From assembly GCA_002269645.1 (NCBI GenBank), contig NIVC01000543.1:434001-498000 (forward strand): a DNA stretch of 64,000 nt, given 5' to 3'. This document shows positions 385 to 63,012 of this stretch, piece after piece. The notes below the pieces were generated by a model that was not told the origin of the DNA, searched no databases, and worked only from the letters and a program-made list of their open reading frames with translations. Numbering within the stretch: position 1 is the stretch's first letter; the number at the start of each line of letters is the position of its first letter. The DNA comes from Macrostomum lignano (lineage: Eukaryota). Position numbers and translations under genes: made by a program.

Positions 385-1874
385 TGCAATCTTGTCCAGG
401 TAGGGCACCCGAACGTTTGGCAGTCGCAGAACCACCGCGGCGGCACTGTAGCTCTCGCTGAAGTACACGGACTCGACCAGGCCCTCCGCCCGGGTGTACC
501 AGTCTTCGCGCAGCGTCTTCCCGAACGCCCGGTTGAACAGTGCGGACATGGCCGGCCGGGAGACGCTTTTCAGCGTGCACTGCTGGATGATTTTCTCGCT
601 GGTGCGGACCATCGTGCCGGAGCCGTGGTGGGTGAACAGCTCCTGCACCACGCAGCCCGCGCTGGTGAGCACCACGTGGCTCTCGCTGGACAGGTTGCCT
701 AACAGCTCGGCCGAGGTCAGCAGCTGGCGACGTTGCTCAGCGTTCAGGTGACTTCTCGGGCCGGTGAGCGGGGCCAGGTCACCTGCGGATGAAGCAGAGA
801 GCAGGAAGAATTAACAAACAAATAATCAAATACTGACTGACTAACTGACTAACTGACTAACTAACTAACTGACCGACTAACTACTTCGGGTGTGTCATAA
901 GTAATGTCACTGATGTGAAAACAGACGAACTTGCAATCGCAGATGAACAAAACTGTACCACTCAACAACATAGAGTCCCCCAATATCAATCACCCTCTGG
1001 CAGTGCTCATACAGCTTGTCCACCTCAGCCTGCAGGTGTTTTTCCTCCAACTGCCATAACCAGTGCAACGCAGCCTGTTTTACCTCTTCATGGTTTGCGA
1101 AACTCTTCTTGGAAAAGTCAGCCTTCAGCCATTTGAACAGGAATCTCTTGCAAAAGTTGAAGTCTGGGCTGTAGGGACTGTCAGAGCATATTCACTTGCC
1201 GTGCAGGCAGAAAATTCGAAACAGCCTTCAGGTGTGCAGCCGTGCGGTGTCCATCTGCCACAGAACCTCGTCCAGGTGACATGGATTTGACCGGAGAGTG
1301 CACCAGAGGTCCCCAGTGTGCCGGAAAAAGTCGATAAAGTACTGGCCATCGACCTTGGTGTTCGGTGGAGTTGTGCAGATGGAGACTCGTTTGTTTGGCG
1401 TGAAGGCTACCAGCAGCATGGTCTTCTTGTCCGAGATGGACTTCCTGGTCACCATCGGCCTGAAGTCCCCAGCTCCCAACCAGCAGCGATTATCTGCCTT
1501 GCTGTCCTTGCCATCCAGGTGGAGCCAGCTTTCATCCTCAGCGACCAGGCAGTTTAGGATGTCATTCAAGCCCTGGCTGCTAAACACCTTGCGGATCTGC
1601 TTGGTGCAGGCGTCATGTCGAGATTCATGATGATTTTTGTTCGCTGCATAGACGATTTTTCATCGCGTTGCACTTGCTAAATCTGCTTGGCGTATTCTTG
1701 CGATAGCTTGGGCCATAAACAACCTTTGCACGTCTCAAATGCACTGCTATTGCTTCACTAAGTATACTTTGCAGCTACACTACCCACAAGTCCATGTGCC
1801 TACATATTTTAGACAGAGGCCTGCAGTGACATTACTTATGACACACCCGAAGTAACTGACTAACTAACTAAGTG

Positions 1875-2052: not shown

Positions 2053-4175
2053 ACCCTAAAATTAGATTTCTCGGTAGTTGCGCGCTCTCTTTTGCACTAC
2101 TTAAGTAGTCTGATTTTCGATCGGCATGGCTGGTTCCAGCAGGTAGTTCCTCTGGATAAAAGCGCTTACCGCGCCCATTGGCTTTCCAGCTGCCTTAATC
2201 GTTTCCGGTGATCTTGTGTGCGTGCATTCAGCTTGATTGGCTGCGGCAAGTAAGCTCGAAAGAGCTCGCTTCGCTCGCTCTTTCTCGCTATCTACTAACT
2301 AACTGACTGACTGACTGACTGACTGACTGACTGACTGACTGACTGACTGACTGACTGACTGACTGACTGACTGACTGACTGACTGACTGACTGACTGACT
2401 GACTGACTGACTGACTGACTGACTGACTGACTGACTGACTGACTGACTGACTGACTGACTGACTGACTGACTGACTGACTGACTGACTGACTGACTGACT
2501 GACTGACTGACTGACTGACTGACTGACTGACTGACTGACTGACTGACTGACTGACTGACTGACTGACTGACTGACTGACTGACTGACTGACTGACTGACT
2601 GACTGACTGACTGACTGACTGACTGACTGACTGACTGACTGACTGACTGACTGACTGACTGACTGACTGACTGACTGACTGACTGACTGACTGACTGACT
2701 GACTGACTGACTGACTGACTGACTGACTGACTGACTGACTGACTGACTGACTGACTGACTGACTGACTGACTGACTGACTGACTGACTGACTGACTGACT
2801 GACTGACTGACTGACTGACTGACTGACTGACTGACTGACTGACTGACTGACTGACTGACTGACTGACTGACTGACTGACTGACTGACTGACTGACTGACT
2901 GACTGACTGACTGACTGACTGACTGACTGACTGACTGACTGACTGACTGACTGACTGACTGACTGACTGACTGACTGACTGACTGACTGACTGACTGACT
3001 GACTGACTGACTGACTGACTGACTGACTGACTGACTGACTGACTGACTGACTGACTGACTGACTGACTGACTGACTGACTGACTGACTGACTGACTGACT
3101 GACTGACTGACTGACTGACTGACTGACTGACTGACTGACTGACTGACTGACTGACTGACTGACTGACTGACTGACTGACTGACTGACTGACTGACTGACT
3201 GACTGACTGACTGACTGACTGACTGACTGACTGACTGACTGACTGACTGACTGACTGACTGACTGACTGACTGACTGACTGACTGACTGACTGACTGACT
3301 GACTGACTGACTGACTGACTGACTGACTGACTGACTGACTGACTGACTGACTGACTGACTGACTGACTGACTGACTAAATAAACAACTAAGTGACTCATT
3401 GTGCACAGCAGGTTCTGGTCAAGCACTCACTGGGCAGCACCACATCACTCATGACGCGGCCTTTCGGGTCCGGCAGGCCAGGCTGCCCGCTCAGCAGCAG
3501 CACCTTCAGCGGGCGGAGGACTTCGCACAGGCGCATCAGAGCGGAGTCGACCACCGCGGCTGAGGCAGCCTCGTCGCCGGCGTCGGAGGCGAGCACCGGG
3601 CAGCAGACGATGGGCACGCAGACCTGCGATAGGGACAGCAGGTCCGCACCTTGCTGCCCGGACACCGAGTCCTCCGACAGGCCGCTCATCAGCAGCACCT
3701 TCGAGGGAACTCCGTGCCTGAGCAGCAGCTGGCCGAGCAGCTCCGCTCGCTGCCAGTCCTCGTCGCCGGACATGCGGCAGATGAGCGCGGACACCAGCCC
3801 GTGCTCGAACAGGAAGGCGGTGGACCAGGCCAGCCGGCGCAGCTCGCGCGTATCGGCGAAGACGTCAGGCGACAGGCGCATCACGGCGAAGGCTCTGCCG
3901 GGCGATTTCGCCGAGAAGTACTTGAAGTACTTCAGCCAGAGCCGGGCCTCCTTGGGCTTGCGGGTGATGTTCTCCACGAATTTGCGGAGGCCGGCCGTTC
4001 CTACCAGACGCTCCGGGCTGCCGGCTGCGGACTCCGGCGCGGCGGCGATGACGGGGATCTCCGGGCTGGTCAGGCGGGTCCAGGGCGAGCTGTTGCCGCT
4101 GAACAGGTAGGAGGAGAGGCACCTGCAGAACAGCGGCCGGCTGCTCAAGGATGCCGCTGCATTTCTAAGTAGCAT
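385..4175 (-). CDS. NAGS: N-acetylglutamate synthase (vertebrate-like, mitochondrial); exons 3431-4175 and 385-782; further 3' exon(s) lie beyond the window start
   Basis: ATG at 4175 with a presequence-like N-terminus (MLLRNAAASLSSRPLFCR). Motifs LRPLKVLLLSGQPGL..DVVLPSDL, ELFTHHGSGT, FNRAFGKTLREDW, YFSESYSAAAVV and PYLDK match NAGS. GT-AG sites (CCCA|gtgagt, ccgcag|GT, GCA|gtgagt) keep the frame. Confidence 0.9.
884..1852 (-). mobile_element. Decayed non-autonomous Tc1/mariner element (969 bp) with fragments of a mariner transposase catalytic domain
   Basis: Perfect 29-bp TIRs (884-912 and 1824-1852, cttcgggtgtgtcataagtaatgtcactg) flanked by TA. Minus-strand fragments VAEDESW, WQMDTARLH, SPYSPDFNFCKRFLF and CQRVIDIGGLYV are broken by stops and frameshifts; no N-terminal HTH region recognised. 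Confidence 0.92.
1853..2052. repeat. (TAAC)n microsatellite, continuing at ~830-883 on the other side of the mariner
   Basis: Direct observation. Confidence 0.9.
2296..3376. repeat. ~1.1 kb nearly pure (GACT)n microsatellite
   Basis: Direct observation. Confidence 0.97.
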
Positions 4176-4669
4176 TATTGCTTTAGTTTGTTAGGATTGC
4201 TGTTGCTCAGTGCTTGTCGAGTCCCTACTCACTGCTGACTGTAGGGGGGCTCAAGTTAATATAGGCAGTGTATAATTAGTTCTGCTGGTCTGCCCTCTGC
4301 TTAGTTGAACAATGAAGCGAAGACGCTTCTGGAAATTTCTTCCACTTTTCTGAGACTCAGTCATGGGGAATTACCGGGTCACTCAGAGCTGAGCTGCAGC
4401 CAATTAGTCTATACCCTTGGTTGCTGTTTCTGCTGTCTTTTTATCGGGGGGGGGGGGGGTGACCACCCCTCAGAGGCTTCATTGTTTTAAAATTGGCAGC
4501 TAGCGTTCTGACTCGGTCAGCGTGTGGTCACGCAGCTCCGCGTGGTTACGATAGTGCGAATTAGCGAGGCTAATATGGCAGTCATACTCAATGCGTGACG
4601 CATGGACTTCTCAGAAGCGAAAAAGCACTTGTTGACGCAACGGAGTTTAAGGGAATTCTATTATGGGAT

Positions 4670-6231: not shown

Positions 6232-9200
6232 TCAGTTCCTCCTGGCGGTCGGCAGTTTGGCGGCCAGCGCCAGTTTCGGCCGCCTGGCGCCTCCCCGCCC
6301 AGCAGCGGCGCCGCCCGCCAGGCGCCGGCCGTCGGTGCGCAGAAATTCGTGCAGCCGGTCGGCGGCCTCCCGCTGCCCGAGGGCCTCCCGCAGCTCGCCG
6401 ACGCCCAGCCGGCACAGACCGGCGAAGCTGCCGCCGGCCGCTTTGATGAGGCCGCGCAGACTCCGGTGGGTGACGCCGGGCATTCGCAGCAGCATGCTCC
6501 GCGCCACGTGACGCAGCGTCGCCGCCGAGGCCGCCGGCGTCAACGAAGTCGACGAAGAAGCCTCGCTGTCGTCGACGTCGTTGTAGGATTCGACGGCGGT
6601 GGCGGCCGAGACTGAGGGCAGCAGCTGCAGCTGCGGCTGCGGGCGGCCCCGCTTGAGGTCGTGGAACAGCTCGGCGCTGGCGTGGGGCGCGGGGCTCCAC
6701 AGGATGCGCAGCTGGGGGAAGTGCAGGGTGAGCAGGCTCAGGCGGGAGATCGTGTCCGAGGAGTTCAGTTCCGAGCTCATGGCGGCCCGGCCGTGGTAAA
6801 GGGCGAAGCCGGTGCGCTCGGCGTCGAATTCGATGAGCAGCACCGGAGTGCGGTAGTGCTGAGTCATGTTCACCACCTGGCGGGGTGAGGTCATTGATGA
6901 CAGGGTGTGAGGTCATTGATGACAGGGTGTGAGGTCATTGATAACTGGGTGTGAAGTCATTGATGACAGGGTGTGAGGTCATTGATGACAGGGTGTGAGA
7001 TGAGGTCATTTGATGACTGGGTGTGAGATGAGGTCATTTGATGACTGGGTGTGAGATGAGGTCATTTGATGACTGGGTGTGAGATGAGGTCATTTGATGA
7101 CTGGGTGTGAGATGAGGTCATTTGATGACTGGGTGTGAGATGAGGTCATTTGATGACTGGGTGTGAGATGAGGTCATTTGATGACTGGGTGTGAGATGAG
7201 GTCATTTGATGACTGGGTGTGAGATGAGGTCATTTGATGACTGGGTGTGAGATGAGGTCATTTGATGACTGGGTGTGAGATGAGGTCATTTGATGACTGG
7301 GTGTGAGATGAGGTCATTTGATGACTGGGTGTGAGATGAGGTCATTTGATGACTGGGTGTGAGATGAGGTCATTTGATGACTGGGTGTGAGATGAGGTCA
7401 TTTGATGACTGGGTGTGAGATGAGGTCATTTGATGACTGGGTGTGAGATGAGGTCATTTGATGACTGGGTGAGGCCATTCCCAATGCGCCCGTGCAGCCC
7501 CGCTCACCTGGTTGTACAGTCGCCCGCTATTAAGCGAGCCAATCAGATCGCTCACGGATTTCCGTTCGACGCAGATGTCGGGCGTCAGCACGTAGTCGCC
7601 GACGTCGATGGTCACCGGCAGGATGGTGATGCCGCGCCTGTGCAGCAGGCAGGGCAGCTCGCTGCGGAATTCGCGGACGTCCACGATCACCTGGGCGGGA
7701 AGTGGAGGCGGCTTGAGCTGGTAAATAATCCATTTTATCGATTGAAAGATACCCTTAAGGCTTAACTGTACGCCACAATACTTAATTATTAGGGGTCCAT
7801 GACATTTGAATGCCGACCTAAACAACCTAAACCCAAACCTAAACTCAAACTTAAACCTAAACTCAAAACTAAACGTAAACCCAAATCAAGTCTAAATTCA
7901 AACCTTATCACAAACCCAAACCCAAACCTAAACCCAGACCTAAACCTAAACCCAAACCTAAACTCAAACCTAAACCTAAACACAAAACTAAACCTAAACC
8001 CAAACCTAAACCCAAACCTAAACCTAAACTCAAACCTAAACCTAAACCTAAACTCAAACCTAAACCTAAACACAAAACTAAGCGTAAACCCAAACCAAGT
8101 CTAAATTCAAACCTTATCACAAACCCAAACCCAAACCCAAACCTAAACTTCAGACCTAAACCTAAACCCAAACCTAAAATCAAACCCAAACCTAAACCTA
8201 AACCCAGTATATCATATAATAATTTCAATAAATATCATATTGTACATGCGCAACACCCGGTTGACCCGGCCGGCTGGCAAGGGCCCCAGACAAGGTAAGT
8301 CGCAAAATGCCCACCAAAAAGGCGGAAAACTAATTAGATGACGAGGCAGTTTTCTTCAAAATAAGTTACTCTTGCCGTTCACCCAAAATTGCGTTACTTT
8401 TTGCTCTAAGGTTTCATTCACAGGTAAGAGTCGCATTTTTGGTCAAAAAGTAAGTCGCACGGCCAGTGGAAATCAGGGGGTTGCGCATGTATGAATAATT
8501 ATTATGCATTCCTAAACATCACCCGGCATCCAACCCTCCAACCATCCAACCTGATGCTGCTCGGCGGCGGCCGCGGCAATCCCATCGTCGGGTCCCGCCA
8601 GTTCCTCCACCGGCGCCAGGTCGCCCTTGACAACCGGCTCGCTCGTCACCACGGCAACGCTGCGCTCACGAATGAGAAACTCGAAGGCCTCCTTCTCCTT
8701 GCGCAGCTGGGTGAGGTAGCGCTGCTCCTCTACGCTGCCCTCGTACACGAAGAAGTACACCACTAGGGGGGCAGCGGCCCCGGCCCGGCTGCGGCACAGG
8801 CTGTGCACCTCCAGCTGCCTGACGCTGGTGGAGTCCGGGTCGTACAGCAGCACCCGGTGCGGCCGCCAGCAGTCCAGCAGCATCGGCAGCGCCTGCTGGT
8901 GCCCCACCGTGGAGTCCTGGCGGCGGGCGGCGCCGACCCCGCCGCTGCCACCAGCCTGGCGCCGCACGGCGAACATCGCGTGACGACAGTCGGACTGGCC
9001 GAACAGCCGCGCCGACGGGAATCGCCGCTTCAATTCGGACTCGTCCACAATTTCCGACGTGGGCTGGTCGACTTTGTCGACTGACTCGACGTCGTCGCCT
9101 TGCTGTTGTGGCTGATCATTGACGTCGCTCGCCGGCCGAATCATCTGAGTCAGGGTGAGCAGGTTCGGCTCTTTGCTCTTCTTCTTTGCCGCCGTTTTTC

Positions 9201-11322
9201 TTGACGACTTTTTCGACGCCGTCGAAGTCGTCGCCGTTGTCGTTGTTTCGACGGCATCTTCGTCGGCGGAGTCGGCGGCGGAGTTGGCATCCGCGGCGAA
9301 GGCCGCCTCGGCGCCCGAGGTGAGGAAGGCGAGCAGCTGGCGCTGAGTAGACGAGTCGTGCACGATGATGAGGGTGCGGAGCTGCTGCTGCTGGGCGGTG
9401 GGGCTGCAGGGCGAGCGGGGTGAAATTGAGATTGAGAAAGCTGCGCGAAAGTCAAGGACTACCCAAGTGGCACAAACCTCCTGCGTCTACTATAAACGGA
9501 TTTACTGTTTTTTCTGTAGAAAAAGTCCAGAAATCCAATAAACACAAATAAGTATTCAATTAACGCAAACATAAATGCGATAAACACAGAATTTGATACA
9601 CACAAACTAGCTAAATAAACCCATACAACTAGGTCAATTAACGCACAACTTAAATAAACGCAAACAGATAGTCAATAAACACAATCGCCAAATAAATAAA
9701 ACTCTAAAAACTCAATAAACGTAAATAAAAATTCACTAAACACAAAGAAGAGTCAATAAACACAAACAAAAATTCTATAAACACAAACACAAATTCAATA
9801 AACACAAAAATTCAATAAACACAAGAACCAACTCATCAGCGCCAGCAACCGGCCGCTGCTGGTCCAGCCGCTCACGCTCCACCTCCTGCAGGATGGCCCG
9901 GCACGACAGCCACTTCGGCGGCACCTCGTAGGAGGCCGGGCCGGAGCCCAGGCGGGCCTTGCTGGCGGCCAGCAGCCGGTCGGCCTCGGCCAGGAACAGC
10001 CAGCCGGAGTTGGCGCCGAAGGCCTTCTCGCTGCTGATCACCGAGGCCACTCGGCGGTGAAAGGCGGCCGGGTCCTCCTGGAGTTCATAATGCACTTCAT
10101 GAATATGAAAGGCTTTCTATGAGCGCTTCAGCTACTCGTGACTCGAGTGCCTGAAGGATTCATCGAGTGCCTGAAGGATTTATTGAGTGCCTGAAGGATT
10201 CATTGAGTGCCTGAAGGATTCATTGAGTGCCTGAAGGATTTATTGAGTGCCTGAAGGATTCATTGAGTGCCTGAAGGATGCATTGAGTACCTGAAGGATT
10301 CATTGAGTGCCTGAAGGATTTATTGAGTGCCTGAAGGATTCATTGAGTGCCTGAAGGATTTATTGAGTGCCTGAAGGATTCATTGAGTGCCTGAAGGATT
10401 CATTGAGTGCCTGAAGGATGCATTGAGTGCCTGAAGGATTCATTGAGTGCCTGAAGGATTTATTGAGTGCCTGAAGGATTTATTGAGTGCCTGAAGGATC
10501 TATTGAGTGCCTGAAGGATCTATTGAGTGCCTGAAGGATCTATTGAGTGCCTGAAGGATTCATTGAGTGCCTGAAGGATTTATTGAGTGCCTGAAGGATC
10601 TATTGAGTGCCTGAAGGATCTATTGAGTGCCTGAAGGATCTATTGAGTGCCTGAAGGATCTATTGAGTGCCTGAAGGATCTATTGAGTGCCTGAAGGATT
10701 CATTGAGTGCCTGAAGGATCTATTGAGTGCCTGAAGGATTCATTGAGTGCCTGAAGGATTTATTGAGTGCCTGAAGGATTTATTGAGTGCCTGAAGGATT
10801 CATTGAGTGCCTGAAGGTAGCTCTTCAGTAGCTCCATTAATGCTTCAGGCACTACATGAATATTTCAGGTGCTGTACCAATTCACTCACTCTGACTAATT
10901 CAAGCACTCTACAAACCTGAGTCAGCGCCAGCAGGAATCTCCGCAGAGTTCTGATGTCGGCCACCAGCTGCCGGCTCCGGTAGCTCATGCGGTGCCACAC
11001 CGGGTCCGTGTACGACCGCAACAGCTGGTCGAAGCCGCGAGTCAGCGCGTTCTCCACCGTCAGCTCGTTGGCGTCCAGCACGGGGGCGGAGCGAGCGAGC
11101 TCCTGCATGCAGGCCTTCAGCAGGTCCACCAGGGCCGACTGGCAGCGCAGCATCGGCTCCGTCAGGTTGACGCGAACCTCCTCCACCTGTGAAGATCGAG
11201 ACGACAGTTTGTCTGAGTGTCTTTCTCAGGCGTCTTTTATGTGTTTTTGTGCGTGTTAATTTATTTAATTTTATTTAATTTTCCCCTTCTTCTAGCTGGA
11301 CCTCTTAAGTTCTGTCTGTCCA

Positions 11323-11390
<68 letters not shown>

Positions 11391-11393
11391 TAG

Positions 11394-11430
<37 letters not shown>

Positions 11431-11493
11431 TAGTGTCTGTCTGTCTGTCTGTCTGTCTTAGTGTCTGTCTGTCTGTCTGTCTGTCTGTCTTAG

Positions 11494-11558
<65 letters not shown>

Positions 11559-13057
11559 GCTGTCCGTCTGTCTGTCTGTCTGTCTACTGTCCGTCTGTCT
11601 GTCTGTCTGTCTGTCACCTGTGGCGGGCAGGCGTCCATGCAGGCGGCCACGCTCTCATGGAACCGGGGCAGCAGGAACAGGCCTGGCACGAACAGGGTGC
11701 GCAGGATTCTCTCGATGCCGAAGCCGCCCCGGGTGAGGCCCTGGGCCCGGTCAGTGATGGCCTTGATGAAGCCGGTGGGGTTCGCCTCCCGGTACAGACG
11801 GAGAACGAAGGCCTCCTGGGGAAATTTGGATTGAAAATTGAGAATCCTCTGGAGATAGAAAACGCACCACACAATGTGTCTGGGTCAGCCGGGTCAAGGA
11901 GGACCTGGTCAGATGGCTGGGTCAAGGAACAGTGGGTCAGATGAGTCAAGAATCTGGGTCAATGATCTGATCAGATGGGTCAATGACCTGATTAGATGGG
12001 TTAATGACCTGACCAGATGGGTCAAGGACCTGATCAGATGGGTCAATAACCTGATCAGATGGGTCAAGGACCTGATCAGATGGGTCAAGGACCTGATCAG
12101 ATGGGTCAAGGATCTGATCAGATGGGTCAAGGACCTGATCAGATGGGTTAAGGACCTGATCAGTAGATGGGTTAAGGACCTGATCAGATGGGTCAAGGAC
12201 CTGATCAGATGGATCAATAACCTGATCAGATGGGTCAAGGACCTGATCAGATGGGTCAATAACCTGATCAGATGGATCAATAACTTGATCAGATGGGTCA
12301 AGGACCTGATCAGATGGGTCAATAACCTGATCAGATGGGTCAAGGATCTGATCAGATGGGTCAATAACCTGATCAGATGGGTCAAGGATCTGATCAGATG
12401 GGTCAAGGATCTGATCAGATGGATCAATAACCTGATCAGATGGGTCAAGGACCTGATCAGATGGGTCAAGGACCTGATCAGATGGGTCAAGGACCTGATC
12501 AGATGGGTCAAGGATCTGAGCAGATGGGTCAAGGACCTGATCAGATGGGTCAAGGACCTGATCAGATGGGTTAAGGACCTGGGCCAACTGGGTCAAGGCC
12601 CGGGTCAAGGAGGAACTTAGTCAAGGCTCACCTGGCACAGGTCCAGCACCTCATCAGCGTGCATCACGATGATGCCGCTCACAGCATCGGCCGGCACCAC
12701 CGAGCGCAAAAAGTCGACCACGAGAATCTGGGCGGACGAGGCAAAAAACACGCCGCCTTCGTTGTAGAGCCGGCGCCTCTCAGCCTGCGGCTGCTCAGAG
12801 GTGAGGGCGCGAGGCGCCGGCGAGACAGGCGGGGCGCCGGAAGCGACGCAGGCGCGCTCGACGTACTCGGCGTAAAACGCGGCCTCGTCGGGCCTCGCGT
12901 TGACCACCAGCACCAGGTGGGCCGGGTCGGAGTAGAGGCGGATGAGCTGGGCGGCCAGCCGGTGCGGGCAGAGGCCGGCGCCGAGGACCGCTAAGCCGTC
13001 CTGGTGAAAGAGGTCCAGGAACAGCGCGCTCTCGTAGTCCAGCAGGCCGTCTGTAGA
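6232..13057 (-). CDS. ERCC4: DNA repair endonuclease XPF; exons 12632-13057, 11618-11815, 10917-11186, 9833-10077, 8551-9403, 7508-7717, 6232-6876 (948 aa without an initiator Met)
   Basis: [114 protein letters not shown] and a C-terminal HhH-like segment (LLRMPGV). All internal splice phases are consistent. Confidence 0.96.
6886..7470. repeat. 22/28-bp minisatellite, XPF intron 6
   Basis: Unit gatgactgggtgtgagatgaggtcattt. Confidence 0.92.
7815..8205. repeat. (AAACCT/AAACCC)n hexamer array, XPF intron 5
   Basis: Direct observation. Confidence 0.85.
8245..8489. mobile_element. TA-target MITE in XPF intron 5
   Basis: TA|CATGCGCAAC ... GTTGCGCATG|TA. Confidence 0.65.
10142..10817. repeat. 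20-bp minisatellite, XPF intron 3
   Basis: Unit cattgagtgcctgaaggatt. Confidence 0.95.
11313..11613. repeat. (GTCT)n microsatellite, XPF intron 2
   Basis: Direct observation. Confidence 0.92.
11950..12595. repeat. 21-bp minisatellite, XPF intron 1
   Basis: Unit gacctgatcagatgggtcaag. Confidence 0.95.
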
Positions 13058-13433
13058 CTGGAATTGGCCAGTTTATGTAAATGCAGATCCGGTGTATTAA
13101 TGAATGAGAAATGAACAGTTAGAATGTCAAAGAGAGATTCATTCATAGCCATTTTTTAACTTATAAAAGATGCACCCGCCACAAGGACAGTCGGTACACA
13201 GACATCTCGAATACAGTTAATTGGCCATTTATTTGAGGCGCAACTCGCATAACAATTGAAACAGATCCGGCTAAATATGCTTCATGCAAATAGTACTATA
13301 TACGAAAATCATTCAATTTCACCTACTAACAGTAGCAAGATGCAAAATGCGGCTGAAATAATAAAATTACAGTATAGACGTAACAGTTTAAATCAATCCA
13401 ATGTCACGGAGTCCGACTGAGCGGCAACTCAAA

Positions 13434-16400
13434 TCAGGTCTGAGTCATCTTCCTCTGCGGGTCGAACAGCAGCCGCTTGAAGTTCAGGCAAACCTCGACC
13501 GGCTCCGAGGCGCCGTCGCCGCCGCTGGCGCCTTTTTTGGCGCGCTTGCCGCCGCCGTAGCGCTGGCAGAATTCGTCCGACAGGGGCTCCGACATGCGGA
13601 CTGTGCACTTGCCGCTCTGCCCGAATGAGCCCTCGATGCGGCCCTGCTGTCCTGTGGACAGGGACACCTGGGGTTCCGGGGGGTGGGGCAGGCGTCACGG
13701 ATGGATGAAAGTGTCACAGCTGAGATTCCATCAAAATCTCATATATCAAAGAGATTGCTCGAAGCCTGTCATAATATCGATAGACAATCTTGTATAGATA
13801 GATCACAGTCTTGTAAGAAGATTTCAAAATCTCAGAGAGGTGAATCAAAATCTCAGAGAGGTGAATCAAAATCTCATAGAAGTGAATCAGAATCTCATAG
13901 AAGTGAATCAGAATATCATAGAAGTGAATCAGAATCTCATAGAAGTGAATCAGAATCTCATAGAAGTGAATCAGAATCTCATAGAAGTGAATCAGAATCT
14001 CATAGAAGTGAATCAGAATCTCATAGAAGTGAATCAGAATCTCATAGAAGTGAATCAGAATCACAGAACTGAATTAAAGTCTCACAGATACCCCGAGACA
14101 AAGAGATCAGTGACATCGAAGCCTTCCCCCCCCCGAATCGCGCACCTGCAGTCCAATAAAGACATCAAGCGCGGTCTCCTTTCGAAACAATCCAGTCACC
14201 ACCACGGTGTAGGGGTCCTTGACCCGGTCCAGCCGGCCTCGCCGACACTTTGGCCGGTAGACTCGAACGAGTTTGGGCAGCTGAGCAGTGCGATAGTCGG
14301 CTGAGGTGAGCAGCTCCAGCGGCCGGCCGTGCATGGCGATGCGGCACACGTTCTGGTTGATGTCCACGTCCAGCTTGGAGACTATCACCGTGGCGCTGGG
14401 CGGGGCCTGGGAGAATTATTGTTGCGTAATGGGATTTCATATTCATAACTGGGATATTGTACGCTGTGGTTTCTGTTACTGTGGGATAGAGATATAAGCT
14501 CAAAGTCTCGTTGGATAGAATATTCCCCTAATGTCAGATCAGAATTCCTCAATATGTCAGAGCCTGTCAGATTACAATTCCCCAGTATGTCGGAGAATGT
14601 ATGAGATTAGAATTCCCCAATATGTCAGAGCCTGTGTCAGATTAGAATTCCCCAATATGTCAGAGCCTGTATCAGATTACAATTCCCCAATATGCCAGAT
14701 CCTGTGTCAGATTACAATTCCCCAATATGTCAGAGCCTGTGTCAGATTACAATTCCCCAATATGTCAGAGCCTGTGTCAGATTACAATTCCCCAGTATGT
14801 CAGAGGCTGTGTCAGACTACAATTCCCCAATATGTCAGAGCCTGTGTAAGATTACAATTCCCCAATATGTCAGAGCCTGTGTCAGATTACAATTCCCCAA
14901 TATGTCAGAGCCTGTGTCAGATTACAATTCCCCAATATGTCAGAGGCTGTGTCAGACTACAATTCCCCAATATGTCAGAGCCTGTGTAAGATTACAATTC
15001 CCCAATATGTCAGAGCCTGTGTCAGATTACAATTCCCCAATATGTCAGAGCCTGTGTCAGATTACAATTCCCCAATATGTCAGAGGCTGTGTCAGACTAC
15101 AATTCCCCAATATGTCAGAGCCTGTGTCAGATTAGAATTCCCCAGTATGTCAGAGCCTGTATCAGATTACAATTCCCCAATATGCCAGAGCCTGTGTCAG
15201 ATTACAATTCCCCAATATGTCAGAGCCTGTATCAGATTACAATTCCCCAATATGCCAGATCCTGTGTCAGATTACAATTCCCCAATATGTCAGAGCCTGT
15301 GTCAGATTACAATTCCCCAATATGTCAGAGCCTGTGTCAGATTACAATTCCCCAGTATGTCAGAGGCTGTGTCAGACTACAATTCCCCAATATGTCAGAG
15401 CCTGTGTAAGATTACAATTCCCCAATATGTCAGAGCCTGTGTCAGATTACAATTCCCCAATATGTCAGAGCCTGTGTCAGATTACAATTCCCCAATATGT
15501 CAGAGGCTGTGTCAGACTACAATTCCCCAATATGTCAGAGCCTGTGTAAGATTACAATTCCCCAATATGTCAGAGCCTGTGTCAGATTACAATTCCCCAA
15601 TATGTCAGAGCCTGTGTCAGATTACAATTCCCCAATATGTCAGAGGCTGTGTCAGACTACAATTCCCCAATATGTCAGAGCCTGTGTCAGATTAGAATTC
15701 CCCAGTATGTCAGAGCCTGTATCAGATTACAATTCCCCAATATGCCAGAGCCTGTGTCAGATTAGAATTCCCCAATATGTCAGAGCCTGTATCAGATTAC
15801 AATTCCCCAATATGCCAGATCCTGTGTCAGATTACAATTCCCCAATATGTCAGAGCCTGTGTCAGATTACAATTCCCCAATATGTCAGAGCCTGTGTCAG
15901 ATTACAATTCCCCAGTATGTCAGAGGCTGTGTCAGACTACAATTCCCCAATATGTCAGAGCCTGTGTAAGATTACAATTCCCCAATATGTCAGAGCCTGT
16001 GTCAGATTACAATTCCCCAATATGTCAGAGCCTGTGTCAGATTACAATTCCCCAATATGTCAGAGGCTGTGTCAGACTACAATTCCCCAATATGTCAGAG
16101 CCTGTGTAAGATTACAATTCCCCAATATGTCAGAGCCTGTGTCAGATTACAATTCCCCAATATGTCAGAGCCTGTGTCAGATTACAATTCCCCAATATGT
16201 CAGAGGCTGTGTCAGACTACAATTCCCCAATATGTCAGAGCCTGTGTCAGATTAGAATTCCCCAGTATGTCAGAGCCTGTATCAGATTACAATTCCCCAA
16301 TATGCCAGAGCCTGTGTCAGATTACAATTCCCCAATATGTCAGAGGCTGTGTCAGACTACAATTCCCCAATATGTCAGAGCCTGTGTCAGATTACAATTC

Positions 16401-18506
16401 CCCAATATGTCAGAGCCTGTGTCAGATTACAATTCCCCAGTATGTCAGAGCCTGTGTCAGACGCTACTCCCCGATCAAGACTCACCAGAACAGGCCGCTC
16501 AAACTCCAGCAGGGCGTGCAGGCCGGGCGGGCAGTCCCGCATGCTGGCCTCGTCCAGGTATTCGCAGAACTGCTCGGCCAGCGGCTGGTCGGGCCGCGGC
16601 GCCTGGAACAGCAGCAGGCTGGCCATGGCGGTCTCGTGACCGAGGCTGACGTGCAGCTTGGACTTGGAGCGCACAGGCAGTTTGTAGTGCGGCACCGGAG
16701 ACACCGGCAGCAGCAGGGCGTGGATGGTGGGCACGGAGCCGGGCGCGCACACCAGGCCGCGCTCGAGCAGGCGCGGGTCCAGCTGGGTGACGCAGAGGCC
16801 CAGCCGGTCGCCCTGCTGAGCGAAATCGACCGGCTTGCGGAATACCTGAGTTGGGGGGGGGGGGCTTGGCTTAGTAATAATGCGAGCATATTACAGCTAT
16901 ACTACTGTTAGGGCTGTGACATTCTGGGTCCACGAGCAACTCAAAACCTTTTAGTGCAAAATGATGCTACTACTGCTACTACTATATTAGTACTACTACA
17001 ATTAGTAATACTAATAATATTAGTAATATCACTACTACCACTAATACTACTACTATTAGTACTACTGATAGTACCATTAATACTATTACTACTATTAATA
17101 CTATTACCTACTACAATTAGTACTACTAATACTATAGTACTACCACTACTACTACTACTACTGCTATTATTATTACTACTACTAATACCACTACTACTAT
17201 TATTACTACTACTACTATTAGTGCTACTACTACTATTAGTACTACTACTACTACTATTAGTACTACTACTACTATTAGTAATACTACTACTGATACTACT
17301 TACTGTTAATACTACTTTTCCACAAAGATAAATACATACGAGCTGACCTGCCGCCGAACACACCCATGCAGAAAAAACATATTTTCAATGCCCCCACCCT
17401 ATGACTGCCCCCTCCAGCCAGACAGCCGATCCCAGCCTCACCTGCATCCCTTTGACTCGACGCTGCTCGTGCGCGACCTCCACGGTGTCGCCAACGCGAA
17501 CGCAGCCGGCCAGGACGGTGCCGGTCAGCACGGTGCCCTGGCCGCGGATGCCGTAGCAGTGGTCCACGGCGAATAGAAACGGACCGGCGGGGCTTCGAGT
17601 GGGCACCGGCGCGGTGGCAACCAGCTGCTTGACGAGATTCGCCAGGCCGATAGGCTCGGGAGCGGCGGCGTCGGGTGCGTCGCCTCCCGACGGGCTGGCG
17701 GCCACGGCTGCCACGGGACAGTTGGCGAACTTCGTGCCGGCCAGGGTCTTCAGCAGGCGCTTGCTCAGCCGGTCCAGGGAGCGGTCGCGCTCCGCTTCCG
17801 GGAGGAGATCCACCTGCGATGAACCGCTTGGCAGTGGAATTGTCTGGGAAATTCCCCTAGGCAATCTTGAAACCCACTGAAAAATTCCTCTAGAGAATTT
17901 CAAATCCTAACAGAAAAATTCCCTTACAGAATCTTAAATCCTACTGAGAAATTCCGCTAGAGAATCTTAAATCCTGCTGAAAAATTCCCCTAGATAATCT
18001 TAAATCCTGCTGAGAAAGTGCTTACACAAAGACTAAACAAATAACAGTGAGTTCGCACTCTGCACCTTATTGATGACAAGCAGCAGGCAGGAGCAGACGA
18101 TCTCGGCCAGCACCAGGCACTCTGCAGTCTGGGTCTGGATGCCCTTAGTAGCGTCCACAACCAGCATCACCGCGTCGATAATCTGGGCACCGCCGATGAC
18201 CGCGCGAATAAGCGATGCGTGTCCGGGACAGTCAACCAGTGTGAACTGCAATTCGGCCGGTCGGCCCCAGCGCTCGGACAGTTCGGCCGGCAGCCGCCGC
18301 CAGGAGCTGCCAGTGGCGGAAGAGTCTTCGTCAGCAAAAGACACGCTGAAAGTTGAGAAGCCCAGGTCCAGGGTGATGCCGCGCTCCTGACTCTGCGGAT
18401 TCTTGTCGAAGCTGGCCGTGCTGGCCTGGGTGCTTAGCGCCTTGGACAGCGAGGTCTTGCCGCTGTCCACGTGACCCAGCACGCCAATGTTCACGTTCAG
18501 CGGCAT
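13434..18506 (-). CDS. EEFSEC: Selenocysteine-specific elongation factor; exons 18066-18506, 17442-17813, 16486-16845, 14146-14406, 13434-13667 (555 aa)
   Basis: NVNIGVLGHVDSGKTSL, ASFDKNPQSQERGITLDLGFS, LVDCPGHASLIRAVIGGAQIID, FAVDHCYGIRGQGTVLTGTV, GRIEGSFGQSGK. All exons are phase 0 with GT-AG sites. Confidence 0.95.
13828..14065. repeat. 21-bp minisatellite, EEFSEC intron 4
   Basis: Unit aatcagaatctcatagaagtg. Confidence 0.92.
14531..16461. repeat. 35-bp minisatellite with 560-bp higher-order period, EEFSEC intron 3
   Basis: Unit cagattacaattccccaatatgtcagagcctgtgt; variant tatgccagat occurs at 14691, 15251 and 15811. Confidence 0.95.
16960..17312. repeat. (ACT/ATT)n low-complexity tract, EEFSEC intron 2
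   Basis: Direct observation. Confidence 0.85.
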
Positions 18507-34442: not shown

Positions 34443-36170
34443 CTAGAGAATCTCGCCCCCATTGCTGGCATCCCGCAGCGCAGCCCCAGCAGCGGCAGCG
34501 CCGTCGGCAGCCTGAGCTTCGTCAGCGCGCAGGCTGTCAACAAACTTGGCAAACAATTCAATGGAAGCCTTCAAAGAAGTGGACTTGTAAGCCATGAGAT
34601 GCGGCTTCTGTTGCTGCTGCTGAGCAGAGGCGGAACTGAGCTCGGCAAGCAGCTGGGCCAGGGTGGGCACAGAGTCCGGCTCGAAGCTGTCAACAGCCGC
34701 CGGATCGAACGGCACGCAGATTCGGCCAGTCTTGGGGTGGACGCAGAACGGCGCCTTCAACAGGTGATTGACGCCGGTGCTGACGCCCACGTCCAGCCTG
34801 GGGTAGGCGTACTGGATCAGCAGCTGCTGCTCCACATCCTGCCGGCCTCGGCTCACGGCGAACTTGCTGATCGTCTTCCAGCGCTTCAAGGACGGATAGG
34901 CGTCGGATCGGCCAGCCAGGAGGCCACGGCGGTGTCCGCCACCGAGCGGAGATCCTCGGGCAGCTGCGCCAACAGGGCGCGGGTTCGATCCTCGGTGCCG
35001 AACAGATCCTGCTGACGGACCAGATCGTCAAATTGGCGACGAATAGCGTCGGCTGCCGCGGCGACGCTGGGATGGCACTTCGGCGGCTGCTGCTGGCCCT
35101 GCTGGGGCTGCTTGTCTCCGGGCCGGCGCACCAGGGACAGGTACTCGATCACGGCGGTGCGAGCATTGGCCGACAGTTGCCGGGCGGTGCGGTCGCAAAT
35201 CCAACAGTGAATGCCGCGACGGCCGGAGTAAACCCACAGCAGGTGGCGGAACCCGAAGTCGCAGCGCAGGGCCCGGTCCAGGACCTGGCGGTGCGGAAAT
35301 CGGCTTTATATTAGTTGCCCACACCTGCTCCAGTCTTGCGCCAGGCCTGAGGCCCAACACCAGCCAAGAAGGGAATCTCAAACTAGCCTTGGGATCCGAG
35401 AACACCCAATGCCAGGCAAAGAACCGGAGCCAGCCCTGAAGCACCCCAAATCAGCCCCGAAGCACCTTCAAAACCAGGCATAACCACCAAAAGCCAGCCC
35501 TGAAGCACCATAAACGAGCCCTGAAGCACGATAAACCAACCCTGAAGCACGCAAAGTCAGCCCTGAAGCACCCAAAGCTAGCCCTGAAGCACCCAAAGCC
35601 AGCCCTGAAGCACTATAAACGAGCCCTGAAGCACGATAAACGAGCCCTGAAGCACGATAAACGAGCCCTGAAGCACGATAAACCAGCCCTGAAGCACCCA
35701 AAGCCAGCCCTGAAGCAATCAAAGCCAGCCCTGAAGCACCCAAAGCCAGCCCTGAAGCACCATACCTGCACAGCGATCCGCATGAACAGCCAGCACTTTG
35801 AGCACACGCGAGCATCTGAGCAGCACAGCCGAACTCCGTCATAGTCGGTGAGGTCAATATCGATCACCAGCTCTTTTTCCTTAGCCTGGAAGGCCCCGCC
35901 GCTGACGGTCGCTCTGTCCCGCGGCCGGCAGCTGTACACGGCGCCGATGTCAATCTTCTCGGGCCGACGGTCCAGCAGGGCTCCGCGAAACTCGGACTCG
36001 TAATTGTAGCTGAGAAATCTCAGGTAGATATCATCGTGCAGGGTCATGGAGAATTCCCTGTTGGCAAAGTAGGCTGGGGATCTGTAGGACAGCCACTGCA
36101 CCATCAGGTGGGTGGGGTACAGCCGCTTGTAGTAGGTTGCCAGCTCCTCCGGTAGCAGCTCCGCGCACAT
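34443..36170 (-). CDS. PRIM1: DNA primase small subunit; exons 35766-36170 and 34443-35284; 1-nt frameshift near 34890-34915 as assembled
   Basis: YYKRLYP, NREFSMTL, KIDIGAVY, EKELVIDIDLTDYD, LWVYSGRRGIHCW, YPRLDVGVS..HLLKAPFCVHPKTGRICVP. The exon sum is 1247 nt, not a multiple of 3. Confidence 0.92.
35435..35760. repeat. 21-bp minisatellite, PRIM1 intron
   Basis: Unit gccctgaagcacgataaacga. Confidence 0.9.
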
Positions 36171-36271
36171 GGTCAAAGGCTGCTGAAGTAGGAAAGCAAA
36201 ATCAAGCAAACTTTATCCCATCATCCCATTTAATTTCCATCTCGATCACCACAACCATCCACCACAACTAT

Positions 36272-57867: not shown

Positions 57868-63012
<5,145 letters not shown>

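Follow-up and report, generated by a model that had tools for sequence, protein, structure and literature searches.

The stretch of DNA analysed here is a window of 64,000 nucleotides (nt) from the flatworm Macrostomum lignano (contig NIVC01000543.1, positions 434,001 to 498,000 of the forward strand; all coordinates below are positions in this window). On its minus strand lies a gene for the structure-specific endonuclease XPF/ERCC4, which has no initiation codon of its own in the genome. The best available explanation, which we regard as probable, is that the spliced leader (SL) of M. lignano is trans-spliced onto an acceptor with exon start at 13057 and that the leader's 3'-terminal AUG then initiates translation of XPF. 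The gene immediately upstream encodes the selenocysteine-specific elongation factor eEFSec (EEFSEC).

An XPF gene without a genomic start codon

The XPF gene extends over positions 6232 to 13057 on the minus strand and consists of seven exons, encoding a protein of approximately 929 amino acids (aa) when the Met from the SL is included; exon junctions 4 and 5 were placed approximately. No frameshifts or stops were found in the seven exons, the nuclease motif (GDXn-ERKX3D) was present and intact, and a tblastn search with the closest full-length orthologue covered the entire protein, the nuclease motif included. Pfam recognized the ERCC4 domain (2e-24), residues 5 to 206 aligned to residues 14 to 207 of human XPF (PDB 6SXA, E 6.5e-42), and the protein also has an N-terminal helicase-like domain, which fits an XPF/ERCC4 structure-specific endonuclease. 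Coding exon 1 (12632 to 13057, minus strand) comprises 142 codons, has a G+C content of 0.68 and is followed by the donor CAG/gtgagc at 12631.

Around the beginning of this exon the XPF frame reads TAA ACT GGC CAA TTC CAG / TCT ACA GAC GGC CTG CTG GAC TAC GAG, with the slash at the exon boundary. A first-pass annotation, made from the letters of this DNA, had reported an in-frame TAA a few codons upstream of the conserved N-terminus and no ATG between, and translation of the frame from 13099 to 12631 bore this out: the TAA lies at 13075 to 13073 on the minus strand, six codons 5' of the first XPF codon (TCT, 13057), and the five sense codons between the two include no ATG. In the other direction, the first ATG, GTG or TTG of the open frame was a GTG at 12913, and the next in-frame Met was located at about residue 130.

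Orthologues were collected in a full HMMER search, which gave 471 relatives, and the best 150 of the 471 were examined. Seventy-eight of these began with Met and carried a motif similar to LL[DE]YE, preceded by a median of 6.5 residues and by 10 or fewer in 50 of the 78; examples are the N-termini MLDYEK, MLEYEN, MSKLLDYEA (Sycon) and MYELLEYEA (Schistosoma spindale). Because the orthologues are this short before the motif, the start codon of the M. lignano protein is required within a few codons of 13057. XPF is thus without a genomic initiation codon, and the genome has a stop instead.

Proteins nearly identical to exon 1 were searched for among 5.8 billion sequences, and the only ones found were three M. 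lignano entries in UniProt (A0A1I8FA24, A0A1I8FQ47, and A0A1I8FI84), one of which was 98 to 100% identical over 56 to 57 aa of the exon. All three are fusions of eEFSec to XPF that lack an initial Met, contain frameshifts and differ from one another, and their match to the window begins exactly at 13057. Since three Met-less models match from this position, the missing ATG is not an error peculiar to the present assembly; the models presumably stem from a separate, earlier assembly, which we take to be error-prone. As to the 13057 acceptor itself, the models are no independent evidence, since a gene predictor picks the site that keeps the frame. In two of the models the junction residues corresponded to no canonical splice sites that we could place in the window, and these were treated as gene-prediction artefacts. 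The protein collections searched with exon 1 contained no transcript-derived XPF protein of M. lignano, and a control search with the N-terminus of the neighbouring gene PRIM1 returned no M. lignano protein at all, so that the RNA of this species is evidently not represented in these collections. Nor were there any rows for ERCC4, XPF or EEFSEC in the supplements of three M. lignano transcriptome papers (PMC5730564, PMC5816591, and PMC5173321).

The acceptor at 13057 and the spliced leader

Directly upstream of the TCT codon, where the first-pass annotation had placed it, is a splice acceptor (TTCCAG, 13058 to 13063 on the minus strand; aattccag/TCTACAGAC) that opens an exon at 13057 in frame with XPF, and this is the proposed site of SL addition. 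M. lignano has a single SL of 35 nt, CGGTCTCTTACTGCGAAGACTCAATTTATTGCATG, which ends in ATG, so that the earlier statement that flatworm leaders end in AUG holds for this species (PMC8629364). The same study reported SL trans-splicing for about 30% of M. lignano genes and for 45% of its human-conserved genes, and gave [T/C]TNCAG (YTNCAG) as the top trans-splice acceptor motif; TTCCAG/TCT fits this motif. Across Macrostomum species the SL is conserved, and its final ATG has been termed the translation start codon (PMC10468722). Public tracks of SL reads and poly(A) sites for M. lignano have been described (PMC5730564). No SL RNA gene was found in the window, even when 3 mismatches were allowed.

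Joined at 13057, the leader gives ...UUGC AUG UCU ACA GAC..., and the XPF frame is then open through exon 1. The in-frame join that the first-pass annotation had predicted was thereby reproduced, and the resulting N-terminus is typical of XPF, with five residues before the LL[DE]YE motif. The distance from the cap to the SL AUG would be 32 nt, sufficient for recognition.

The sequence leading up to the acceptor has several features of its own. A branch-point-like TTCTAAC (13118 to 13124, minus strand), previously described as lying some 60 nt before the acceptor, is located 61 nt upstream of the acceptor G and may act as a branch point; it sits in the most pyrimidine-rich part of the spacer, and matches to YURAY occur closer to the exon, at approximately 13100 to 13096 and 13108 to 13104. 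A zone of 100 nt without any AG (13060 to 13159, minus strand) ends at the AG of the 13057 acceptor, and gaps between successive AGs of at least 98 nt made up 20 of 4356 on the minus strand. The spacer has a G+C content of 0.37 and the exon one of 0.68, and by maximum likelihood the composition changes at 13049; this change and the AG-free zone both mark the exon boundary.

Seven nt downstream there is a second acceptor, CTACAG (tctacag/ACGGCC; 13051 to 13056, minus strand), with its exon start at 13050 and out of frame with XPF. Both acceptors match YTNCAG, and the motif therefore gives no choice between them. An SL joined at 13050 would open an out-of-frame open reading frame (ORF) of 20 codons followed by a stop. 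Under the scanning rule, splicing normally takes the first AG. We favour 13057 over 13050 because it alone yields XPF and because its AG is the first after the AG-free zone.

Several observations weigh against SL initiation at 13057. The 13050 acceptor, although out of frame, is equally good by motif. The 13057 acceptor has a weak polypyrimidine tract next to it (9 of 18), and its exon begins with T, whereas the eight confidently placed junctions of XPF and eEFSec (6232 to 18506, minus strand) are all phase 0 and of the form CAG/GT...CAG/G. The best polypyrimidine tract of the spacer (ctgtaattttattatttcag) belongs to yet another YTNCAG acceptor, at 13352, which opens a candidate mini-exon of 22 nt, CCGCATTTTGCATCTTGCTACT (13331 to 13352, minus strand; acceptor ttattatttcag/CC), which has a fair donor, ACT/gttagt, at 13330. 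The weak donors gtttgt and gttgga are genuinely used in introns of this gene, so weak donors in the spacer are possible as well. The context of the SL AUG is poor, with U at −3 and U at +4. Finally, SL addition at XPF, the choice of 13057 and translation from the SL AUG are all inferred from the sequence.

The last coding exon of eEFSec (13434 to 13667, minus strand) ends in ...CLNFKRLLFDPQRKMTQT followed by the TGA stop at 13436 to 13434. From there it is exactly 376 nt to the XPF exon start, the distance given in the first-pass annotation. The upstream gene was identified by the Pfam domains eEFSec_4th (5e-31, for the assembled protein), euk_SelB_III and GTP_EFTU. The two genes are neighbours on the minus strand with no opposite-strand gene between them, and the spacer (13058 to 13433, minus strand) is AT-rich, with a G+C content of 0.37. 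It presumably comprises the eEFSec 3' untranslated region (3' UTR), followed by an intercistronic region or an outron. No tandem repeat, Rfam family or tRNA was found in the spacer, its ORFs on both strands had no Pfam match, and Rfam and tRNA scans of the whole window returned nothing. A 9-mer that is repeated in the spacer, CCGGATCTG, was set aside as a chance occurrence (approximately 0.26 expected).

The AATAAA that had been noted at about 13230 is present as a single copy (13228 to 13233, minus strand) and is the sole canonical poly(A) signal between eEFSec and XPF. Judged from its position, cleavage would place the eEFSec 3' end at approximately 13215 to 13200, some 150 nt upstream of the XPF acceptor. 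A GU-rich stretch, TGTCTGTGTACCGACTGTCCTTGTGG (13179 to 13204, minus strand), 25 to 50 nt downstream of AATAAA, looks like the downstream element for cleavage and polyadenylation expected of a working poly(A) site. Nearer to XPF, an out-of-frame ORF of 53 codons (12991 to 13152, minus strand) without a Pfam hit is opened by ATGs at 13152, 13146, and 13142. Because this ORF spans the XPF start, a long unprocessed leader would be unfavourable for XPF translation.

We propose that the 35-nt SL (...UUGCAUG) would be trans-spliced onto TTCCAG/TCT at exon start 13057 and that its 3'-terminal AUG would serve as the XPF initiator, giving (M)STDGLL.... The RNA that bears the acceptor would probably be the downstream half of a dicistronic eEFSec-XPF precursor, freed by cleavage at the AATAAA signal approximately 150 nt upstream. 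A promoter within the spacer that produced a short outron would serve just as well, and SL-AUG initiation could therefore operate with a promoter and outron of XPF's own and does not need a polycistron. That the two genes share a polycistronic precursor is what their arrangement suggests to us; if XPF is trans-spliced, our guess leans somewhat towards a precursor dicistronic with eEFSec over one made from a spacer promoter.

Initiation from a leader-supplied AUG has precedents in flatworms. All flatworm SLs reported so far end in AUG (PMC12582326). Cheng et al. 2006, as cited in PMC9851317, found that 28% of trans-spliced Schistosoma mansoni mRNAs have the SL AUG in frame and that more than 40 complementary DNAs (cDNAs) need it, and SL-AUG initiation as described in that work is quoted also in PMC12582326 and PMC3510090. 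In Echinococcus granulosus, prediction gave 143 of 187 SL-bearing clusters as full length with the SL ATG as start, and several clusters need it for a conserved N-terminus (PMC3510090). The XPF locus resembles the SL-AUG mRNAs of S. mansoni and S. japonicum, as far as these are described in the sources citing them, in that the SL ends in AUG, the acceptor is at the first codon of a conserved ORF without an AUG, and the N-terminus fits the orthologues; as in E. granulosus, the SL AUG would be needed to match a conserved N-terminus (PMC3510090). In contrast to the schistosomes, the host here is a free-living, early-branching macrostomorph. We found no literature that names XPF/ERCC4 as an SL-AUG case, the coverage being of papers other than Cheng et al. 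2006 itself. The locus is also similar to the slORFs of slORFfinder (PMC9851317), ORFs that exist only on the trans-spliced mRNA, although in the XPF case the slORF would encode the canonical protein and would be no alternative or upstream ORF.

The arrangement of the two genes also resembles known operons. In M. lignano, operons include approximately 15% of genes, with repeat-adjusted spacers that peak at about 100 bp and a cut-off of 1 kb (Ustyantsev & Berezikov 2021, PMC8629364). Like these, eEFSec and XPF are same-strand neighbours, both conserved, with a repeat-free spacer of less than 1 kb; the predicted distance from poly(A) site to acceptor of about 150 nt compares with the published mode of about 100 bp. 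For both comparisons it holds that the XPF case and its pairing with eEFSec are read from the genome only, whereas the SL was seen on cDNAs in E. granulosus, and M. lignano operons are defined by SL reads on the downstream gene. SL2 operons of Caenorhabditis elegans are resolved by poly(A) cleavage and trans-splicing about 100 nt further on, with a pyrimidine-rich stretch between the two sites, and in the proposed model the downstream cistron would likewise be resolved by poly(A) cleavage and trans-splicing, with pyrimidine-rich sequence between the two signals here as well. The nematode has a specialized SL2 for this, unlike M. lignano with its single SL, and we know of no nematode SL with an AUG that is used as the normal initiator.

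Outside Macrostomum, the closest XPF was encoded by an intronless gene (47% identity; positions 2081 to 4660 of the 6.2-kb Logan contig DRR639838_75667). It has an acceptor-like ttgattttcag 6 nt upstream of its ATG (ATAAAAATGGGT), and the AUG of a flatworm-type SL would be in frame there too. We dropped this contig as a comparative operon, since a G+C gradient from 0.31 to 0.64 suggests a possible chimera.

Other ways to start XPF

Trans-splicing might take place mostly at other acceptors. Were the SL added chiefly at 13050, or at 13352 and then spliced through the mini-exon, the leader's AUG would miss the XPF frame on most of this copy's mRNAs, 13057 would be used productively only as a minor event, and the copy would yield little XPF or none. 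Both sites fit YTNCAG, that at 13352 has the strongest pyrimidine tract of the spacer, and S. mansoni commonly has alternative trans-splice acceptors close to the main one (PMC5832876). The mini-exon contains no ATG, and it is used by the UniProt model A0A1I8FQ47 (residues SRILHLAT); it could be a real minor isoform or a gene-prediction artefact. The 13352 acceptor lies, though, upstream of the sole eEFSec poly(A) signal, that is, within the eEFSec 3' UTR, and between 13057 and 13050 the scanning rule favours the AG at 13059 to 13058 as the first past the AG-free zone. An XPF gene that is intact over seven exons with a conserved nuclease motif must, moreover, be translated somehow, and we consider predominant out-of-frame SL addition unlikely. 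The choice between 13057 and 13050 (perhaps also 13352) might also serve as a translational on/off switch for XPF, since in a gene without its own AUG the SL acceptor alone would decide between XPF and a 20-codon dead-end ORF. We regard such a switch as improbable; if it existed, the output of a repair nuclease would be set at the trans-splicing step, in an operon shared with the selenocysteine elongation factor.

An ordinary 5' exon, located in the spacer or farther upstream and cis-spliced to 13057, could bring in an ATG and leave the SL no role in initiation. The first-pass annotation had named such an exon, formed from weak donors, as the finding that would speak against SL initiation, and we looked for it in the spacer and found no convincing one. 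The spacer contains eight ATGs and 24 GT dinucleotides, and ten ATG...GT pairs are in frame with XPF, for example, the ATG at 13205 with CGG/gtgcat at 13175 or TCT/gtgtac at 13199. None of the 24 GTs is a GTRAG; the donors present in the spacer are the GTTAGT of the mini-exon at 13330 and several weak GTs. Real introns of this gene do use donors other than GTRAG (gtttgt, gttgga), but the eight confident XPF and eEFSec donors are all AG/GT, while none of the ten in-frame donors follows AG (TTC/gtatat, CGA/gttgcg, ACT/gtattc, TCT/gtgtac, CGG/gtgcat, and ACT/gttcat). The candidate donors also lie around the eEFSec poly(A) signal or downstream of it, the N-terminal extensions that spacer exons would add have no counterpart in the orthologues, and the three UniProt models are without an ATG exon of this kind. 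A cis-spliced start exon thus appears distinctly unlikely.

Initiation at a non-AUG codon would dispense with a genomic ATG altogether. If the mRNA were not trans-spliced, or were trans-spliced elsewhere, translation could begin at the CUG at 13045 to 13040, with (M)LDYE... or a similar product. The two CTG codons there (13040 to 13045, minus strand) encode Leu5 and Leu6 in the LLDYE motif; no other near-cognate codons would yield a near-normal XPF without the SL, and these two are positioned where several orthologues have their Met (MLDYEK, MLEYEN). On any longer leader, however, the ATGs at 13152, 13146, and 13142 would open the overlapping out-of-frame ORF. Non-AUG initiation as the sole route is rare, and in M. 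lignano the SL is already available as an AUG donor; a CUG start is, in our judgement, very unlikely.

The genome of M. lignano is that of a hidden polyploid and is heavily duplicated (PMC8629364, PMC10468722), and the copy in the window could be a decaying duplicate that lost its start while a paralogue keeps a genomic ATG, or the ATG could have been lost by an assembly error. The absence of frameshifts and stops from the seven exons and the intact catalytic motif argue against decay. Against an assembly error stand the three UniProt models, which share the Met-less STDGLL start and which we take to derive from another assembly. Both versions of this explanation are highly improbable.

The remaining route is a conjoined eEFSec-XPF protein, in which a phase-0 donor of eEFSec would be cis-spliced to 13057. 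With the confidently placed introns all in phase 0, joining any eEFSec donor to 13057 would give an in-frame fusion. Two candidate donors lead to such a fusion without meeting a stop: that of the penultimate exon, which is a natural one, and a cryptic phase-0 donor, GAG/gtttgc, in the last eEFSec exon (13493 to 13498, minus strand, a range comprising the exonic GAG and gtt; donor G at 13493), which would give ...ASEPVE/STDGLL. Each of the three UniProt models fuses eEFSec to XPF, and the 13493 donor is used in one of them, but we think a conjoined protein extremely unlikely: the models are ridden with frameshifts, disagree with one another and look like predictor stitching, the route via the mini-exon falls out of frame when eEFSec is read in its true frame, a fusion would cost eEFSec its conserved C-terminus and lengthen XPF by about 530 aa, and no fusion-like orthologue other than the M. 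lignano models was found among the best 150 of the 471 relatives. The features of the spacer listed in the first-pass annotation all stood, although it had missed both the canonical mini-exon and this in-frame fusion route.

The surrounding gene cluster and the meaning of the locus

The minus strand between about 400 and 52000 carries at least seven conserved genes: MED12, PRIM1, WDR36/Utp21, BORCS5 (LOH1CR12 domain), eEFSec, XPF, and a gene with an N-acetylglutamate synthase NAT domain (NAGS-like), the last being the next gene downstream of XPF. In the four genes whose ATG could be placed, a YTNCAG acceptor was found 12 nt (PRIM1), 26 nt (BORCS5), 20 nt (eEFSec), and 63 nt (NAGS-like) upstream of the gene's own ATG. 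At the density of this motif on the minus strand, 1 per 274 nt, the joint probability, calculated post hoc, is approximately 7e-5. XPF matches the pattern of its neighbours, with an acceptor distance of zero. An SL joined at the PRIM1 acceptor (cctacttcag/CAG, 36170 to 36182, minus strand) would also have its AUG in frame (MQPLTMCAELL...), and a genomic AUG follows five codons on. PRIM1 may thus be a second candidate for SL-AUG initiation with the genomic AUG as back-up, and it appears to resemble other E. granulosus transcripts, in which a genomic AUG follows a few codons on. In the remaining three (BORCS5, eEFSec, NAGS-like), the leader's AUG would begin a short upstream ORF. The acceptors in these genes suggest that trans-splicing is pervasive in this gene cluster.

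Between 34 and 17316, introns and spacers are full of long and very regular micro- and minisatellites, with spurious long ORFs in all frames. These arrays include a 21-nt unit repeated 30 times in XPF intron 1 (11955 to 12581), a 35-nt unit repeated 55 times in an eEFSec intron (14532 to 16461), ACTG repeated 271 times (2294 to 3376), a 20-nt unit repeated 34 times (10145 to 10817), and a 28-nt unit repeated 18 times (6974 to 7471). In an intron of the NAGS-like gene (910 to 1659, minus strand), two adjoining open segments of approximately 143 and 94 aa (...SPYSPDFNFCKRFLFKWLK...) were found, which we take to resemble a remnant of a mariner/Tc1-type transposase; they had no Pfam match at E ≤ 0.001. 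Near-identical inverted segments (58430 to 58790 with 62370 to 62730, and 58742 to 59650 with 61538 to 62419) flank minisatellite arrays near the high-coordinate end of the window. They share peptide strings (ATPLHRAFLHARQSLAVKSERTYNLVVLLESL...) on opposite strands and may represent a large inverted repeat or a transposon.

Together, these results suggest that XPF is probably one more gene of the established flatworm SL-AUG type, in Macrostomum. This mechanism dates back to Cheng et al. 2006 and is recognized in Macrostomum as well, and the XPF locus changes nothing about it. Genome-only predictors cannot find such genes, and the three UniProt models of XPF are wrong eEFSec-XPF fusions. If SL-AUG initiation of XPF is correct, knock-in, reporter, and RNA interference designs for M. 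lignano XPF must allow for a Met supplied by the SL, and an essential, conserved protein would have its start codon only after trans-splicing, in a free-living flatworm in which transgenesis is feasible.

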